Assembly (NCBI GenBank): GCA_904063045.1 | Contig: CAJFCJ010000009.1 | Location: forward strand, 1,984,968 to 2,048,967 | Origin: Dimorphilus gyrociliatus | Taxonomy: Eukaryota; Animalia; Annelida | Direction: 5' to 3' | DNA length: 64,000 bases | Shown here: positions 54,481-64,000 of the stretch, in pieces | How the letters are laid out: every line of letters begins with the position of its first letter | Numbering within the stretch: the stretch's first letter is position 1 | Program-made: the position numbers and the translations under genes | Notes under the pieces: model-generated | Databases searched by the model: none | What the model was told of the DNA's origin: nothing | What the model saw: the letters and a program-made list of their open reading frames with translations, nothing else

Positions 54481-57400
54481 TATATTAGTATTATATAAAA
54501 AAAATACAGGAAGACGTTTAAAACTGCAACTTTTCAATCTTTCATTCGCCAAAATCAATATCTTATTAACCAGCCAATTATATTAAATAGAAAACTATTT
54601 AACATCGCCTCTCTTTTTACTTGGAAAACAATCTTACAGCAAGATTTTTTGTGGACAAGTATAAAATAAAAAAGAACTATATGTAAGAAGAGATAAAGGA
54701 AGTTTTTAAAAGAAAAGAGAAACATAAGGAATAGAGAAGAGAATAAAAATTATCGCAATAAAAGGGAAAGAAAATGATTTTAAAAAAGAATCTCATATTG
54801 CTTTCTCTTCTTCGTTCAATTAAATGTATACAAAATCGATTAGATAAGCCTTTGCTAAACGTAGGCCTTTACAAGAGATTTTATAGTAACAGTTGCGAGG
54901 TGATTATTGAACGATTGAATGAATAGAACGAACGAGTGGGTGGAGAAAGAAATAAATAAGAGTAAATTTAAGGGTACCAAGGCCTACTTGGTTTGTAAAT
55001 AGAAGGAAAATTTCCGCTACGAATTCTAAGGAATAAAGAAAAAGCTTTCTTTTCTATTCAGTATATTTTCAATTTCGAAATAAAAAGATCGCTTATTTAA
55101 TTAAACTTATTCAATTATACTTTTATTAACTAGTAATTATTAATTTATATTCATTAAAGAGTTTAAATTTTTCGCTTCCACCCCTTCTTTTCATTTTATC
55201 CTCGTCCTCATTGTTTACACGATTGAACTGTGTAATTAATCGTATAGGACCTAGAGTATCGATCAAAAACTCTTTTTCCTATCTCTCTTCCCCCCTCCCT
55301 TCTCTATTTTATTTGTCCGTCCGCCCCTACTCCCTCCCCCTACCTTTACCTGCCAACCCCCCCCTCTCTCTCTCGCTCTCTCGCTCCCTCTCTTTTCATT
55401 TCTCAATTCAAAAGCAATTGCATCCGCCAATCGTTTTTTTATTTCATTTTCGCCACTTCAGCATTCGCAAGACGAAGATGATATAGAAATCGACAACGAA
55501 GAAGAACAAATGAAAAACGGAATTGACGATAGTACTCCTCGAAGGGGTCATCTAGTGACGTTTTTTAGAAATGGTGATTGTAACTATAAAGGTTTGAGGA
55601 CGGCTATAAGTTCAAAACATTTTGGTAACGTGGAAACGCTAATGGTTTGGTTGAATGACAAAATACCAACAGCTGCCGGAGTTCGCTATATTTTCTCGTT
55701 ACCAGAAGCGAAACTAGTAAGGGATATTACTGAATTTGGTAATGGGGGATCCTATGTTGTTTCAAGCGTTAGAAAACTAATAGGTATAGTTATTTTTTAA
55801 ACACAATTGTTTGGTGTATATTCAATATACGACAATTTCGTTTGATTAATCGATTAAGTAATCTATCCAACTTTTTTATATTCGATTTATAGACGTCGAT
55901 TACGGGTTTTCAAAGGAAGGTTATTGGGTAAATAGACGGCCAACTGCGTCGAAATTTCGAAGATCCGATCAGAATTTATTAGATCTTGCATCACCAGTAA
56001 CTAGCCAAACCTTGTCAAGATCAAACTCTTTGAGAAGCGTGGAATCAACACCCCGTGAATTATTAATAGTCAGTAACACGAAAAGATCTTCAAGACAAAA
56101 GATTTTCCTTAATCCTAAAACAAATCAAGACTTTTCAAGATTTCTTTACGACTTAGGTAATACAGTAGAGCTTGATTATCCGCCTATTACCGCCCTTTTT
56201 ACCGCACAACCACCTTATAAGAAGGTCGAGAGCTATTCACAATTATTGAGAGATTGTAAACTCAACGACGCTTTTATTGCTTGCGGTCAAGAGGGTAAAC
56301 CTAAAGAGTTTAATCAAAGCGATTCCGAAACACCAAGAAACCAATCAAAACGTTCTTATTTACAACAATATAAAGCAAATAAACAAGCTGTACAGCCGAA
56401 GAGAGATCGCTGGGAAAGTGAAGATACATCCATACCAAAACCTAAGCCTAATGAACTTGACCATACAATCAATGTTCTGCGAGCCGAAATTAATGGAAGA
56501 AGAAGAAGTTTTTTAATTCCTACTTCTCTAACAAAACAAGCTAATTCTCTTAGGCCTAAGAAAAGATTAAAATTAGATTGGATTTATGGAATGAATACGT
56601 CATCCAAGCATCCTCTTCATGTACTATCGACTGGTGAATTAGTTTATACAGTAGCAAATATTGCTGTAGTTTATGATAGGAAAAAGTCAGCTCAGAGGTT
56701 TTTCACAGGCCATAAAATGCCTATAACTTGCTTAACAGTTCATCCAGATCCACTTCAGCCATATGTAGCTACAGTTCAGTCGGTGAGGCCTGTAATAAAA
56801 ATATGGGACGCCAGATCACTCGCCATTTACGGCGAGATAGGAGAAGGTAGTTTACAAGGCAATATTTCCAGTATTCAATTCTCAGTTACGGGATTAATGT
56901 TAGCCGTTGACTCGTCAGACAAGCACACTCTCTTCATATGGGATTGGAGGAACAAAGAACTTCTCATAAGGACAATGGTAAGTTCATAAATCTTTATATT
57001 TCTTTATAGTTTATAGTTCCATTTAACCCCCTTAGCCTATCCTTTGCTTAATCCATGTTTTTTAAAATTAATCGAACTTTAGTAAACAATTATTATTTCG
57101 TCTTTTCCTAATTAATCGTCAGTTGGACGGTTGGGCTGATTTTTTAACATCTTTAAGATATTCAACACTATCCGCCAAATACATGATGCTATTGGTAAGC
57201 TTAAGCACAACATGGAAATATCAAACTTTCCCTTATCTTTTTTTTTAAAAAAAAAAAAAGACAAAAAATAAAAAGTAAAAATGCAAATTCTTTTTATCAC
57301 GTAACATAAATGAAAGACACTAAATATTTTAGATTCTACACGCATATTTAATCTTTATATATATGTATGTATACTGTATATATAAATATACGGTATATAT

Positions 57401-59254
57401 GAATGAAATGCAAGTTAATAAATGAATTATAATCAACATTAAAGAAATATAAGAGAATATGAAACATATTGATTATAATAAATCACTATAGATTGTATTT
57501 CTTTTATCATTATTCAATAAACAAAAGCATTCGCACTGCACTAACAATTGGGAAAAAGCTGGATCGGTAAGGCAAATCTTCTACTGTATATTATATGCAA
57601 TACTGTAGTACACATGATGTTCTGTTATGATATCTCTCTCTTCTTTATTATAACTATATGTATTTGTATTCTATCTTCATCCACATTAGATTTAAAATGA
57701 AATATTAAACTTTTCTTTTCCAAATTATTTTTTTTATAAAAAAACAAAATTGCACAAAAAAATTATTTTTTTCTATTTTACTTTATTTCATGATAGTAAT
57801 GTTCTAAAAATGTTTATTATTAGGCTACAACGGAAACTTCAGTGGTATCTGCTATTTTTCATCCACACGATCCGAGTTTGATAATTACCTACGGCAGGCA
57901 GCACATACATTTTTGGAAGTTATTTACCGAAGGCGATAACTCGTACAAGTTACTCAGAGATAAGGATAGTGGAAATTTTATCGATTATTTTGCCCCAATT
58001 CCAAGCCATGTTACCGCTGTATCATTTTCACCAAGTGGAGATGTTGTTACTGCCGATTCTGAAGGAAGGATTATTGTTTGGAGTAAAGATGAAACTGATG
58101 CTTATACCATTAATGAAGAATACAGCGGGGATTTATTACGAGCTCATTATAAGAAGCCTATAACATCCTTAACTACCTTAGGAGATGGTACATTATTATC
58201 GTGTGCTGGTAATGAAATAAAAGCATGGGATTTATCGGCTGATTATCGATTTGTGACTGAACGTTTAATACCGGAAGTTGCGGGAACTATTAAGAGTGTT
58301 GTAACAAGAAATATTGGTGGAATGGATGGTGCTATTTACGTAGTTACGGCTAAATCATCATTTTTAGAGGGATCTTTACAAGATAAACTGTCATTCGTCT
58401 TCCATGCTCATTCTCAATCAATAGCAGGGCTCGCTGTTCATCCAAGTGAACCTTTCTTTTACACTGCTGGTCAGGACTCTTACGTTTGTAAATGGTCCGC
58501 TGCGAAGAAGAAGATGATCTGGCGAATTCATGTTGATATTAGTTGTTCATCTTTGGCTCTTGACCCGCATGGAAAGGTTCTTTCAGTGGGTACTTCTAAT
58601 GGACGTCTAATTGCTTTGAATGCTTTAACTGGCGATCATCTATCGTCGATTCAAATATCAAATGATTTACTTGATTCAGTCAGCTATTCACCGAAAGGCG
58701 ATCGCTTAGCAGCCGCGTGCCATGACGGAAACGTCTATATTTTCGACGTACTCGACGATTCCGTAGTCTATAGGAGAAGAGACAAAAAAGGAACTCTCCG
58801 AGGTCATAACAATGCTGTTTTAAACATCGATTGGGACAAAAGTGGAAGATATATACAAAGTGAATCGCGAGACTTTGACATATTGAATTGGGATACTGAT
58901 AAAATGAGTATTGTTAAAGAAGAAACAGCTGCAAAATTTGAATGGAGTACGCATAGCTGTACAATTGGAGCCAGAATTTCTGGAGCTTGGGCAAACATAG
59001 CAGATGGAGGCTATATAAGTTGCTGTAATACAAATTGGAATGGAAAATTACTATTAACCGGCGGAGCGGAAGGTTCCATAAAACTTTACAATTATCCTTG
59101 TTTACCAAATTCAAATTTTGACGAAAGACGTCCGTACTGGGACGTTGTTAGACGAGTTAACTTCTCGGCCGATGATTGCCACGCATTTACAATTGGTGGA
59201 AAAGAGAGCGCCATTCTACAATGGTCTCTCTCCGACCAATTAGAATTTACGTGA
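53939..59254 (+). CDS. EML-family microtubule-associated protein with N-terminal doublecortin domain(s), DCX-EMAP type. Exons 53939-54067 (probable), 55462-55783, 55893-56977, 57824-59254
   Basis: DCX signature VTFFRNGD...GVRYIFSL...GGSYVVSS; a second DCX-like stretch PRELLIVSN...; HELP motif KRLKLDWIYG; many WD40 repeats (e.g. LRGHNNAVLNIDWD, GGKESAILQW). Confidence 0.87.
54443..54475. repeat. (TA)n microsatellite preceded by ATACTG, in EML intron 1
   Basis: Seen directly in the sequence. Confidence 0.95.
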
Positions 59255-59699
59255 ATAAAAAAGTAAAAGTTTACTTATCAAAAATTCAGAATTATGCATT
59301 TAAAAATGAATTTATTATGTAAATACCAACTAACTATTTAAGTACAAATTCAAAAACAAATAGGGTGAAAGAAATGCCATAAGTAGTTTACATTAATTCC
59401 ATTTATTAACATTAAATTACACAAAAGAAGACTATACTATCAAACTATTCTACTAAAGATTATATAAATACATTTACAAACACAATAATCTTTTGTAAAT
59501 TAGTGATATTTTCAGATAATAAAGATAATATAGATGGTATCTTTATTATCATCATTGGCTTGTTTTTCAACAGAGGTACAATATTAAAAAAATAATCATT
59601 TTGACCTTACTAAAAGGAAAGGAAGAATCTGAAAATATGTGCGTGTGTTTGTTTGTGTCTAAGAGTGTAAAGAGTGTAAAGGTGTAAGTTCTTTTTTCC

Positions 59700-62581
59700 T
59701 CACGTCATCGTCATAGGTTCAACCGGAACAAGTCTAAACATCTGATTGTTATTTGCCAAGAAGAAGCCTCCATTTGCTAGAATGCTTGTTGGTATTGGCT
59801 CAGGATTCGCAATTTCTGTCACTTCATTTTGGGTTCTTACAGGTTGTTCCTGTATATCAGATAAGGTTGGGCCATCTTTCATTAACTCCTGAAAAAGTTG
59901 ATTTATCCACGCTTCCGAATCGCCTCTTTCGCTCATTCTATCTGAATCTGAATCAGCATTATTACCGAATGCTGGTGCAGCAGGATTATAAGGTCGACTA
60001 AATATATTCCCATCGGGCGAGCAAGGAGATGAATTTGGATCCGATCGATTTTCACTACCAGCTATTTCATCATGTTCATTCTCCCTTTCAACTTTCGAAA
60101 CATCAACAACAATAATTGTTGTCATTTGTAGTTCTTCATATGAGGTTGAACTGCCTTTAGACATTTCTATAGGAGAAGTACAGCCTTTGAAATTCTACTT
60201 TTACTCTTCTTTATTTATATTTAAATAATTTTTATCAATAACTAATAATATACCTGGAACCATACTCAAAATATATTCGCTGTTATTTACAAACTCTTTT
60301 TCTGATCCATCATAAATGACCAGTTTCCTCAGTAGGGGGAAACGTTGTCTCTTTCTAAGAAAAAGATAAAACAAGTCAGCGATAAACAAAAGAATAAGTA
60401 GGCAGTAAATTATAGAAGGTATAATATGTTATTGAGTATTATAGAGCACCAATACCGATTTAATGATAACTTACATTGGACAATCATACTGCATTGAAAG
60501 TAGAATACGAACAAGGCCAGTTTTCTTTAATTCTTTTTCTTTAAGATTTTGTCTTGTTTTCAAAATGATTCTTTTATCTCTAGAAGTTACATATAAAACT
60601 TCTAGAGTTAATTGTCCGCAAACTTCCTGAGACTGATCCTTATTTATAGCCTTTTCGCTAAATCTTACAAGAAATGCACCGTGCTTCCTCTGTCCATCAA
60701 ATAATATTGCTTTTACGTGATTGGGTGTAGCAAAGCCAAAAATAACCCTAATAAATTAATGAATGATTATTAATAATTTAATTTAAATTTCAATTATTAT
60801 TATACCCTTTGGCCCATTCAATTTTATAGTTACTGGCAGTAGTGAGGCAAGCGTAGAAATATTTCCAAAAGGTAAAATCCTTACCACTTTCTTCGCGAAG
60901 TCGTTTCTATAATAAAGAATAGTTGATTAATAAAAAAATATCAAAGTTACACAAATATTCTATAACGGACCCTATGAAATTGTTCCCAAGTAACTTCTTC
61001 ATCATCAAAATTGTCTCGATATTCACAGCCTATAAAAATTAAAATAGATTATTAAATATGTAAAATATAATTCATTTTATATTTATTTATCTTACGGAGA
61101 ACTCTCGACGCTAAATATTTCAGGTCGTTATCATTCAAAGGTCTTTGATATTTAGCAGTAAATGTCTTCTTTGACCAAATAGATTTTAGAAATTTCTTTA
61201 AATAAACCCATTTAACTTTTGTAGGTATTTGGCTATCCTGTACTCTACCTCTCTGTAAACAAAAAAAGCAGATTTATATAGTTATATACATTATATATTG
61301 TTTACCAATTAAATTAAATCTTACCGATGAATTGCCGAATAAATTAAACCAAAAAATTGTACCAAGAGCATCAACAGTTTGAGTAACGTGTTTTATCAAA
61401 GTGATTGGCAATGTTATATCCTAAAATGAATTTTATTGTTTAAAATGAATTTTAGATTTATTATATAAACTTATATAAACTTACTTTGGCAAGACAACTT
61501 TTAAAATGCGGTATATCTGTTTGGCATTCAACTTGTATAACAAAAAAATACTTTTTCTCCCTTATAAAGTCTTTTTTATCGGATTTTTCTTGTCTGTTTA
61601 CACGATCCATACTAAGTTTCTGAATATTCCATACGATACTTCGGTCTGTTGATTCGCTATCGTGTCTCAAATGTTCTTTGGTAATAATTCGTCCAAATTT
61701 GTTTATATATCTTTCAGAATCTCTATCCCATACTCTCGACGCTTGTTCGACATCACATTCGTAAATGGGTATTACTTGAAGGGGCGACGTTACTTTTAAA
61801 CAATCTTGACCCAACAATTTCACAACCATTGGAATATTCTTTATAATCTTTTTATCAACTTTTAATATTTGAGGTGGTTGATTGACAATTATCAATGCCG
61901 AACTAATTGTTAGAGATCATTTTAAAGTATAAATAATTTCTATTTACGTATTATCAAAAGATAAGTAAATACCGTTCTACAAAATCCATAACAGGCTTAT
62001 ATAAAAGATTTATAATTTCTCCGGCTTGATTCACATGCATATGATCGATGCATTTTTCCACAATTTTTCTTGCCGTTAATAGAAACATTCGAGATCTGAA
62101 CGGATAGAATGAATGGATTGATAGATAAATGAATAAATAACTAATGTAATTACCCGTCATCAATGAGTCTTAAGCATTCGGGACCATGATTTTGAAAATC
62201 TTCAACAAGACCTGAACCATTTAAACTTTTTCTTTGACAAATTTTCCAGTAATCAATAACATACTGTATAATTATTATTCAAATTAGTAAATTAGGTTTT
62301 AATTAGGTCTTTTCAATGGAAATATTTACACATAATCGGCCCTTCAAATCGATTAGCATGTGACAAACATGCTTAAATTCTCCAATTCCTCCAGAGAAGT
62401 CTCTCTGTATTGTTGACAGAAATTTGACTTTGCTATAAGACGTAGAATCATATTTTTAGTAAAATATTCAAACCTTGTTTACATCATTACAAGCATCAAA
62501 TATAGATTTATTAAAATTCTTGACTTCTTCTTCAAGAGAGGAGTATTTACAAGTCCTTTCCCAAAACGACGACTCCCCCAT
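59700..62581 (-). CDS. STAT: Highly divergent STAT transcription factor, about 695 aa. Exons 62581-62474, 62404-62330, 62263-62154, 62095-61973, 61902-61485, 61420-61325, 61252-61096, 61029-60971, 60906-60806, 60747-60475, 60354-60254, 60166-59700
   Basis: Collinear matches to STAT5-type domains: coiled-coil YWKICQRKSLNG; DBD SALIIVNQPPQILK and LPITLIKHVTQ...TIFWFNLF; linker VKW...LNDNDLKYLASRV, VTWEQFHR and FTFWKYF; SH2 WAKGVIFGF...GAFLVRFSE; tail NSEYILSMVP. All 11 introns are GT-AG and the total of 2088 nt keeps the frame. The start codon and exon 1-2 junction are the least certain parts. Confidence 0.85.
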
Positions 62582-64000
62582 TATCCGAATGAAATCTTGA
62601 AAAGCAACTGACTGAAAAAGATCTGATTCGTGCTTCTGTAGGCGATGCTTATTGGTCGAGTAGTTGGCCTATCCCTGCTCAATATTATTCTTCGCGTTAT
62701 TGTTAGAGATATTTGCTAATTTTTAATATTACACAATTAAAGATGTACTCATAATTCTACAACATATCTTTGATAACTGAGAAAAAACTGATGGCTTATT
62801 CTCAAGAGTTCAGACTTGTAACTACTGTTTATGGTACTGCTCTATAAAGCATTTTTGAGTACTTATCATAAACAACATTGCATTGAAAGCAAGATAAGAT
62901 AGCGAAATGATAATAGACTGTTTTGTGATATTTAGTATTTTATATAAAGAAACCTGCCTTTGATGCAAAAATCAAAACTTCCTCATAGCTTTATTTCAAA
63001 CTCGAAATGGCGGTATAGTGTATTCTATAAATAACTTACAAAATGGAAAGTCCCTTTTTTTCCATAGATGCGATAAATTGATAGAAACAGAGTAGTCACA
63101 ATGAAATGTTACGCATTATATATTTAAAATTATTTAGTTTTATTACAAGATGTTATCATTACCAGAGAAAATATTCTACAATTGTTGAATAGAATTTTTA
63201 TGTGTTATTGAAAAACTTTGGACGGAAACGGGAGAAGCAGTAAAAGAGAGAGAGAGAGAAGGAGAGAGAATGAAAGAGGGAGGGAAGATATAGAAAAACA
63301 TTCATTTATAGTCATACACACGTAAACACAAATAGCACACACAAAAAAAACAAAGATAAATGATTGAAACAAGATATGATTTTATTCTCATATAGACTAT
63401 GATTCATTATATCCATTACATATTTGTTATGATTTCCCCAGCTTCTTTCTTTGGCATAGTTTAAGATATAGAATATGTACCGCTCTATTGTCATTGCTTC
63501 GCTATTGTAAAATGATCTTTTTACGTCATTAGTAATGCTCCTAAAGAAAATAGTCCTATATGTATCAGACTACTTTTTCATACTTTAACAAAAACGTACC
63601 AATTCTTTGCATACCTTTTTCTATACTGATATATATTTTCATCTTTTATTTTATTCTCTCTCTTTAACCCCTGAAGGATTGTTCTGGGAAGAATAAATGA
63701 TCCCTATTGTAGAAATCGTTCCTGCCTCTCCAACGATGATGACAATTAATGTTCTAATTAGATTTACTATTATATATTATATAGGTTAAATGTGTGTATG
63801 CTATCAAGCGAATCAAACTATTCAATTCATAAAAAAACAGGTCATTTTTTAATAGAAAAAGCAAAGAAAAGAGATACTCTTTTCATTAAAATCACAAATA
63901 AGATAGACCTCTATCTTTCTCTCTAAAACAAGCCTATAAAACAAACTTATAACAGATTTTGTACTTTATTCAGTTTTTGGACAAAACTAGAATTCGAGTA

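Follow-up and report, generated by a model that had tools for sequence, protein, structure and literature searches.

Can a STAT be retained in an animal without the N-terminal domain by which the canonical members of the family are defined, and if so, how would it work? The question is raised by a gene in a 64,000-nucleotide stretch of the annelid Dimorphilus gyrociliatus (GenBank assembly GCA_904063045.1, scaffold CAJFCJ010000009.1, positions 1,984,968 to 2,048,967), referred to here as the window, in which positions 59700-62581 of the minus strand had been presented in a preliminary description as a cryptic, highly divergent STAT with no N-terminal domain (N-domain). STATs of this kind, known from nematodes and Dictyostelium, have been used to argue that STAT signaling predates the JAKs. 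The N-domain has a role in STAT-STAT contacts (PMC8607625), and the gene repertoire of D. gyrociliatus has been reported to be largely conserved (PMC7854359); neither the genome paper and its supplementary material nor further publications in which the animal appears make any statement on STAT or JAK. The analysis that follows gives good support to the reading of the gene product as a divergent STAT that lacks the N-domain. The protein is best explained as a STAT resembling STAT5/6 that evolves fast and is restricted to its lineage, and as such an odd member of a known family rather than a new pathway.

Identification of a divergent STAT

The proposal of a STAT in the canonical domain order is supported by both sequence profiles and structural matches. 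The Pfam profile STAT_bind (PF02864) scored 29.9 bits (E 9.3e-7) over residues 146-285 of the full protein and 32.6 bits (E 1.4e-7) with exon 5 alone, against a cut-off of 27, while STAT_linker (PF21354) scored 48.6 bits (E 1.1e-12), again above its cut-off, over residues 317-399 of the full protein and 24.9 bits with a single exon; in an orthologous protein the linker profile reached 46.6 bits. The full protein had no match to STAT_int (PF02865) or STAT_alpha (PF01017), and its match to the Pfam SH2 profile was partial (residues 423-449), at 12.8 bits for the full protein and 17 bits for the single exon (range 12.8-19.5) under a cut-off of 21.

Among PDB sequences, phmmer with the full protein placed STAT5B and STAT5A first (E 2.6e-21, residues 127-450), followed by STAT6 (E 1e-11), STAT1 and STAT3 (E 1e-10) and then STAT2, the bit scores being 78.7 for STAT5, 46.7 for STAT6 and 42-44 for STAT1/3; on these scores the protein would tentatively be placed nearer to STAT5/6 than to STAT1-4. 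Exon 5 or exon 10 alone gave no STAT match in the same search, and a profile search of the PDB with the region from the SH2 domain to the tail gave an alignment that ends at strand betaB. To call the protein highly divergent is fair, yet relative, given that the full-length sequence matches STAT5 at E 1e-21.

Structural comparison led to the same family. An AlphaFold2 model built from a three-sequence alignment had a predicted local distance difference test score (pLDDT) of 44.5 overall, with residues 11-140 alone usable, and a second AlphaFold model of residues 279-572 reached 41.0. Foldseek of the first model against the PDB returned STAT cores for all of the best 41 matches, at 13-17% identity, and VIA-align to STAT5, STAT3 and STAT1 gave Z scores of about 15 with a root-mean-square deviation (rmsd) of 3.3-3.8 Å over 230-247 residues. 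The superposition on STAT5 holds over model residues 17-296, yet the model itself is poor beyond residue 140. The ESM Atlas carries its own model of the sequence (predicted TM-score, pTM, 0.68), which aligns across residues 8-639 with clusters of STAT5A and STAT6 at a TM-score of 0.66, and this model is the sole source of support for the SH2 fold.

Two relatives were recovered. The ortholog (P0003), 56% identical, is encoded by a transcript contig of 2660 nt (L001) from another sample (SRR31837527), and the second relative (P0002) is a fragment of 147 amino acids, 52% identical. An exhaustive HMMER search with the DNA-binding domain (DBD) of exon 5 through 1.84 billion representatives (E 0.001) found the protein itself and P0002 and no canonical STAT; word-index searches with the full length, with residues 140-450 and with a two-sequence profile found the protein itself and one ortholog. 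Because no relatives beyond P0003 and P0002 were found, we regard the lineage as narrow and fast-evolving. As a separate observation on the ortholog, its public gene call was made with a prokaryote-style gene caller and for this reason starts too early, at a GTG that precedes the true ATG by ten codons.

Gene structure and transcription

The coding region extends from the ATG at 62581 to the stop codon at 59702-59700 and comprises 12 coding exons (coding sequence of 2088 nt, 695 amino acids), in an AT-rich window (about 30% G+C) with very short introns. The model was obtained by joining twelve open segments with GT-AG borders in one frame, the borders then being checked against RNA contigs. 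The resulting protein equals, letter for letter, the public protein DgyrCDS7762 of D. gyrociliatus (P0001), whose locus is this scaffold and whose gene model carries no name. The twelve-exon structure and coordinates of the preliminary description were therefore correct, every intron being present in RNA contigs and the protein being that of the public record; "cryptic" describes the gene in so far as it is unnamed, yet overstates the case, since a public protein with STAT Pfam matches exists. The features of the coding region are as follows.

59700-62581, minus strand: STAT coding region of 12 exons including the stop, 695 amino acids, DgyrCDS7762 (gene model, identity with P0001, introns of the RNA contig).
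62162-62581, minus strand: probable shortened four-helix coiled coil, amino acids 1-140, encoded by exons 1-4 and the first part of exon 5 (the coordinates include the introns), with the tryptophan W67 in WKICQRKSLNGSG (AlphaFold2 helices, STAT2 alignment).
61485-61902, minus strand: exon 5, most of the DBD (amino acids 140-278), with IREKK at 252 (Pfam STAT_bind, STAT5B alignment).
61325-61420, minus strand: exon 6, last part of the DBD, containing LPITLIKHVTQ and His289 (phmmer alignment to STAT5B/5A, invariant in the ortholog).
60806-61252, minus strand: exons 7-9, linker domain, amino acids 311-415 (Pfam STAT_linker).
60475-60747, minus strand: exon 10, predicted SH2 domain (amino acids 416-506) with Arg444 in FLVRFSE and an insert in the BC loop (STAT5/6 alignments from alphaA to betaB; low divergence from the ortholog).
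60254-60354, minus strand: exon 11, end of the SH2 domain and tail segment with the candidate Tyr534 (Y534, S537, M538 and P540 invariant in the ortholog).
59700-60166, minus strand: exon 12, acidic tail (amino acids 541-695, pI 4.2) with Tyr550, VDVSKV and the stop codon at 59702-59700 (acceptor 60166 from RNA).

Four public RNA runs were compared with positions 58200-64000 of the window as assembled contigs, which report presence and splicing rather than expression level or transcript ends. A single contig of 5788 nt (run X4) contains all 11 coding introns, as CT..AC joints that correspond to GT..AG on the minus strand, and several of the same joints occur at 99% identity or more in run X1, a coral-tank metatranscriptome, and in run X3, from an invertebrate. 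Transcription of the gene and the modeled splicing are thereby shown. For the last exon an acceptor at 60184 was considered and rejected, since the joint in the RNA contig puts the acceptor at 60166; the acidic tail of 155 residues that had been described earlier has this length as well, which implies that the correct acceptor had been used.

The bases at 62020, 62047 and 62059 are not the same in the X1 contig as in the window, and the contig has, beside a normal intron, an odd non-GT-AG joint from 62096 to 62157 (TG..CG, with 2 letters between). At a depth of about 3.5, these departures within 61973-62157 are probably due to faulty assembly or to a difference between strains.

Absence of the N-domain and a probable shortened coiled coil

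Whether the N-domain is truly missing depends on the 5' end of the gene, for which the RNA contigs show two non-coding leader exons that join one acceptor at 62674, one ending at 63615 (X4) and the other at 62735 (X1).

62582-62674, minus strand: 5' untranslated region (UTR) within the ATG exon, acceptor 62674, in-frame TAG at 62671-62669 (X4 joint from 62673/4 to 63614; X1 joint to 62734).
63615-63644, minus strand: leader exon 1a (non-coding), 30 nt or more, GT donor 63614, with an upstream open reading frame (uORF) of 17 codons (X4 contig joint).
62735-62789, minus strand: leader exon 1b (non-coding, alternative to 1a), 55 nt or more, GT donor 62734 (X1 contig joint that skips 60 nt).

In both leader forms the frame of the ATG reads GGA TAG just after the acceptor, and this stop codon lies inside the ATG exon, between acceptor and ATG, so the reading frame cannot be extended upstream. 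The next gene on the same strand lies 2.4 kb upstream of the ATG, and the intervening DNA contains only low-complexity open reading frames (ORFs), none of which matches Pfam or resembles STAT_int. Read from its first ATG, the orthologous transcript encodes a protein that begins with MTESIY..., aligned with MGESSF... of DgyrCDS7762, and here also a stop codon (TGA) lies upstream in frame. The structural alignment with STATs, finally, begins at the first coiled-coil helix, model residues 14-17 being placed against STAT residues 136-138. From the leader stop, the lack of a suitable upstream ORF, the shared start in the ortholog and the structural start near STAT residue 136, four independent lines, it follows that the STAT_int domain is absent, as had been proposed, and that the protein begins directly at what is probably a shortened coiled coil.

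The same observations bear on the view that this is an ordinary fast-evolving STAT ortholog whose N-domain appears lost only because the 5' end is incomplete or because a different first exon supplies the coding sequence. It can be said in its favor that contigs cannot reveal true transcript starts and that two leader forms make the 5' structure variable; against this, both leaders carry the in-frame TAG in the ATG exon, the transcript of the ortholog shares the start and has an upstream stop of its own, no STAT_int-like ORF is found before the neighboring gene, and the structural alignment starts as late as STAT residue 136 or so. An upstream coding exon was rejected on the stops in both leaders, the upstream ORFs and the start of the ortholog, and we consider an ordinary ortholog of this kind highly improbable.

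The coiled coil itself appears reduced, a point that the preliminary description had missed. AlphaFold2 predicts helices at residues 13-36, 43-75, 81-116 and 119-140 (pLDDT 70-87), and the isolated coiled coil of STAT2 (141-315) aligns with model residues 13-145 at Z 11.9 (rmsd 2.3 Å, 130 residues), a value that helical bundles often reach by chance; it is the continuation of the structural alignment into the DBD that argues for homology. With about 130 of some 175 coiled-coil residues alignable, the domain is about 45 residues short. The tryptophan W67, located in a region that resembles the WKRRQQ turn of STAT coiled coils, is invariant in the ortholog and stands 79 residues before the DBD, as in STAT3. 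As this distance is normal and only 66 residues lie between the start and W67, the shortening falls in the first two helices.

Conservation of the DNA-contact, SH2 and tail regions

Comparison of the two orthologs by the Nei-Gojobori method gave nonsynonymous divergences (dN) that rise from 0.15 in SH2 through 0.23 (linker), 0.34 (DBD) and 0.60 (coiled coil) to 1.07 (tail), in a comparison where synonymous divergence (dS) is saturated, exceeding 1 almost everywhere. SH2, with the lowest dN of all domains, and the linker are thus the most constrained, and the preservation of SH2 argues that it still does something specific.

In the DBD, LPITLIKHVTQ aligns with LPVVVIVHGSQ, with KHVTQ at amino acid 288 and His289 as a histidine of the STAT5/6 type, and IREKK (amino acid 252) aligns with VTEEK, making the loop more basic. 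In SH2, FLVRFSE (amino acids 441-447, positions 60674-60654) aligns with FLLRFSD of STAT5/6, by which the arginine at betaB5 is kept as Arg444. Directly after it, at amino acid 448, lies the insert KAINKDQSQEVC, whose stretch KAINKDQSQE lengthens the phosphate-binding BC loop; the stretch is presumably an insertion relative to SEIGG of STAT5/6, the point at which the HMMER alignment ends. In the tail segment a candidate activating tyrosine, Tyr534 (60275-60273), is found in NNSEYILSMVP, to be compared with ANSPYVKSMTP; the two suggest a conserved motif NSxY[IV]xSMxP, in which the residue following the tyrosine is Ile or Val, recalling STAT5 and STAT6. Arg444, the BC-loop insert, Tyr534, His289 and IREKK are all invariant in the ortholog, and Tyr550 is conserved as well.

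The ortholog thereby upholds several earlier claims, namely the intact SH2 arginine, the insert after FLVRFSE, the candidate activating tyrosine, and the change from VTEE to IREK together with a retained STAT5/6-type histidine, the last being also aligned to STAT5. The acidic character of the tail is likewise supported, by its pI of 4.2. Another claim, that PCSP (amino acid 588) could be a serine site, is not sustained, as PCSP is not kept in the ortholog, which has a longer tail whose only sequence likeness to this one is VDVSKV.

A proposed mechanism and its alternatives

The most likely mechanism, which we regard as rather probable, is that of an ordinary tyrosine-triggered SH2 dimer that is unable to tetramerize. 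As a latent transcription factor, the protein would become active when the candidate Tyr534, about 90 residues after Arg444, is phosphorylated, and once phosphorylated it would form a parallel dimer through reciprocal SH2-phosphotyrosine contacts. This dimer would be expected to bind palindromes resembling the gamma-activated sequence (GAS) by means of the STAT5/6-type His289 and the more basic IREKK loop, with the acidic tail as a putative transactivation region. Without the N-domain, neither tetramers on tandem sites mediated by that domain nor unphosphorylated dimers dependent on it should be formed.

Several observations weigh against this mechanism. The lysine in alphaA of the SH2 domain helps to hold the phosphate in STAT structures (K591 in STAT3); the alphaA lysine of STAT5/6 (GFVNK, GFISK) aligns with Pro424 in both orthologs, a substitution absent from the preliminary description. 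The BC-loop insert of 8-9 residues may mean that phosphotyrosine binding is altered or lost. The SH2 Pfam score is under its cut-off and HMMER alignments to STAT structures end just past betaB; both AlphaFold models are poor past residue 140, a range that includes the SH2 pocket; and the tail (amino acids 541-695) is almost unconserved save for VDVSKV.

The altered lysine, the insert and the low SH2 score would be accounted for if this STAT-derived protein no longer signaled by phosphotyrosine and kept SH2 as a structural or protein-docking module, in the manner of STA-2 and STA-1 of Caenorhabditis elegans, with control by release from a tether, by Ser/Thr phosphorylation or by constitutive repression, a behavior comparable to that of unphosphorylated STATs. 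The nearest clusters by ESM features are nematode STAT-like proteins, a weak lead in the same direction. C. elegans has two STAT-like proteins and no JAK or cytokine receptor components, STA-1 and STA-2 act in innate immunity without them, and STA-2 is regulated by its release from hemidesmosomes (PMC8607625). On the other side, the betaB5 arginine and Tyr534 with its Ile/Val at +1 are invariant between proteins only 52-56% identical, and SH2 is the most constrained domain of all. The spacing from Arg to Tyr, once the insert is allowed for, is also presumably close to that of STAT5. Loss of phosphotyrosine signaling is in our view the main alternative to the tyrosine-triggered dimer, if an unlikely one.

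The lack of the N-domain could also be read as pointing to a protein whose main role is to pair with STAT paralogs of the genome or to regulate them in a dominant-negative way, forming heterodimers through SH2-phosphotyrosine contacts and no tetramers; N-terminally truncated STATs cannot tetramerize. The DBD, however, is complete and conserved, with its DNA-contact histidine and basic loop, and the acidic tail is typical of activators, which makes this role very unlikely.

A more far-reaching proposal, which we put forward as an unlikely one, would make the protein part of a clade evolved by dinophilid annelids, whose STATs would have short coiled coils and no N-domain. In them a remodeled SH2 domain, with proline in alphaA and a lengthened phosphate-binding loop, and the matching tail motif Y-[IV]-x-S-M-x-P might form a private dimerization code, insulated from the canonical STAT and operated by a kinase other than JAK, as a lineage-specific expansion of STATs for immunity in a miniaturized animal. 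A possible JAK-independence and a new specificity for DNA or peptide had been suggested in the preliminary description.

Leaders, promoters and neighboring genes

Upstream of the stop codon in the ATG exon the two leader forms contain only short uORFs, the 17-codon one in one form and two very short ones in the other. Two leaders with uORFs hint at alternative promoters and translational control of the STAT mRNA. A promoter near 63010, as had been suggested, could at best serve leader 1b and would not be the sole one, leader 1a ending at 63615.

The neighbor on the plus strand (55255-59251) is convergent with the STAT gene; its public product, of 988 amino acids, is a fusion of a doublecortin (DCX) domain with beta-propellers of the EML type. 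One X4 contig runs unbroken from the last STAT exon across the 450-nt gap (59252-59699), which holds polyadenylation signals of both strands, into the DCX/EML gene; given this continuity, the 3' UTRs of the two genes probably overlap in antisense. The upstream neighbor on the minus strand, from about position 64978 in window numbering and thus past the end of the window, encodes a giant secreted lectin/mucin-like protein of more than 3539 amino acids with PAN, C-type lectin, VWD, C8 and TIL domains.

Comparison with known STATs

Through these results DgyrCDS7762, so far a public protein with no name, can be named and its domains mapped, which is an advance at the level of annotation and not a new principle. 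A conserved and expressed annelid example would nonetheless provide a natural test of the need for the N-domain and the long coiled-coil hairpin, and would show how far the phosphate pocket of SH2 can change under strong constraint.

A survey from 2026 placed all invertebrate STATs in the STAT5/6 branch and reported STATs without the N-domain in Lingula and lamprey (PMC13203501). The closest sequence matches of the annelid protein are vertebrate STAT5A/STAT5B and STAT6 (PDB 1Y1U, 6MBW, 4Y5U, 5D39), with which it has in common the predicted order of coiled coil, DBD, linker and SH2, the DNA-contact histidine (VVIVHGSQ compared with LIKHVTQ), the arginine of FLxRFS and a tail tyrosine followed by Ile or Val, together with the structural likeness to STAT5 (Z about 15 over residues 17-296). 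It differs from them in having no N-domain, in its short first two coiled-coil helices, in the changes from VTEEK to IREKK and from the alphaA lysine to proline, in the 8-9 residues inserted after FLVRFSE, and in an unrelated tail.

Nematode STATs are not known to have the N-domain. Since Dictyostelium members are likewise without N-terminal sequences (PMC8607625), the N-domain (PF02865) defines canonical STATs and not the whole family. With STA-1 and STA-2 of C. elegans the annelid protein shares the condition of an animal STAT of reduced architecture, and nematode STAT-like clusters are its nearest by ESM features. The reductions are not the same, however: STA-2 is described as being without the coiled coil and the tyrosine motif, whereas the annelid protein keeps a short coiled coil and a conserved tyrosine, and STA-1 is without the transactivation domain, whereas the annelid protein has an acidic tail (PMC8607625). 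The losses of the N-domain in nematode and annelid STATs are likely to have been independent.

The Dictyostelium STATs (STATa-d) offer the most distant parallel. They have a coiled coil, a DBD and an SH2 domain and lack the N-domain of metazoan members (PMC8607625), and their representative in the PDB, 1UUR, is among the Foldseek matches of the annelid model. It is a much weaker match than the vertebrate STATs (E 4e-4 with Foldseek, 0.44 with the profile) and comes from a non-metazoan lineage, and the Dictyostelium proteins have no transactivation domain, unlike the annelid STAT with its acidic tail.

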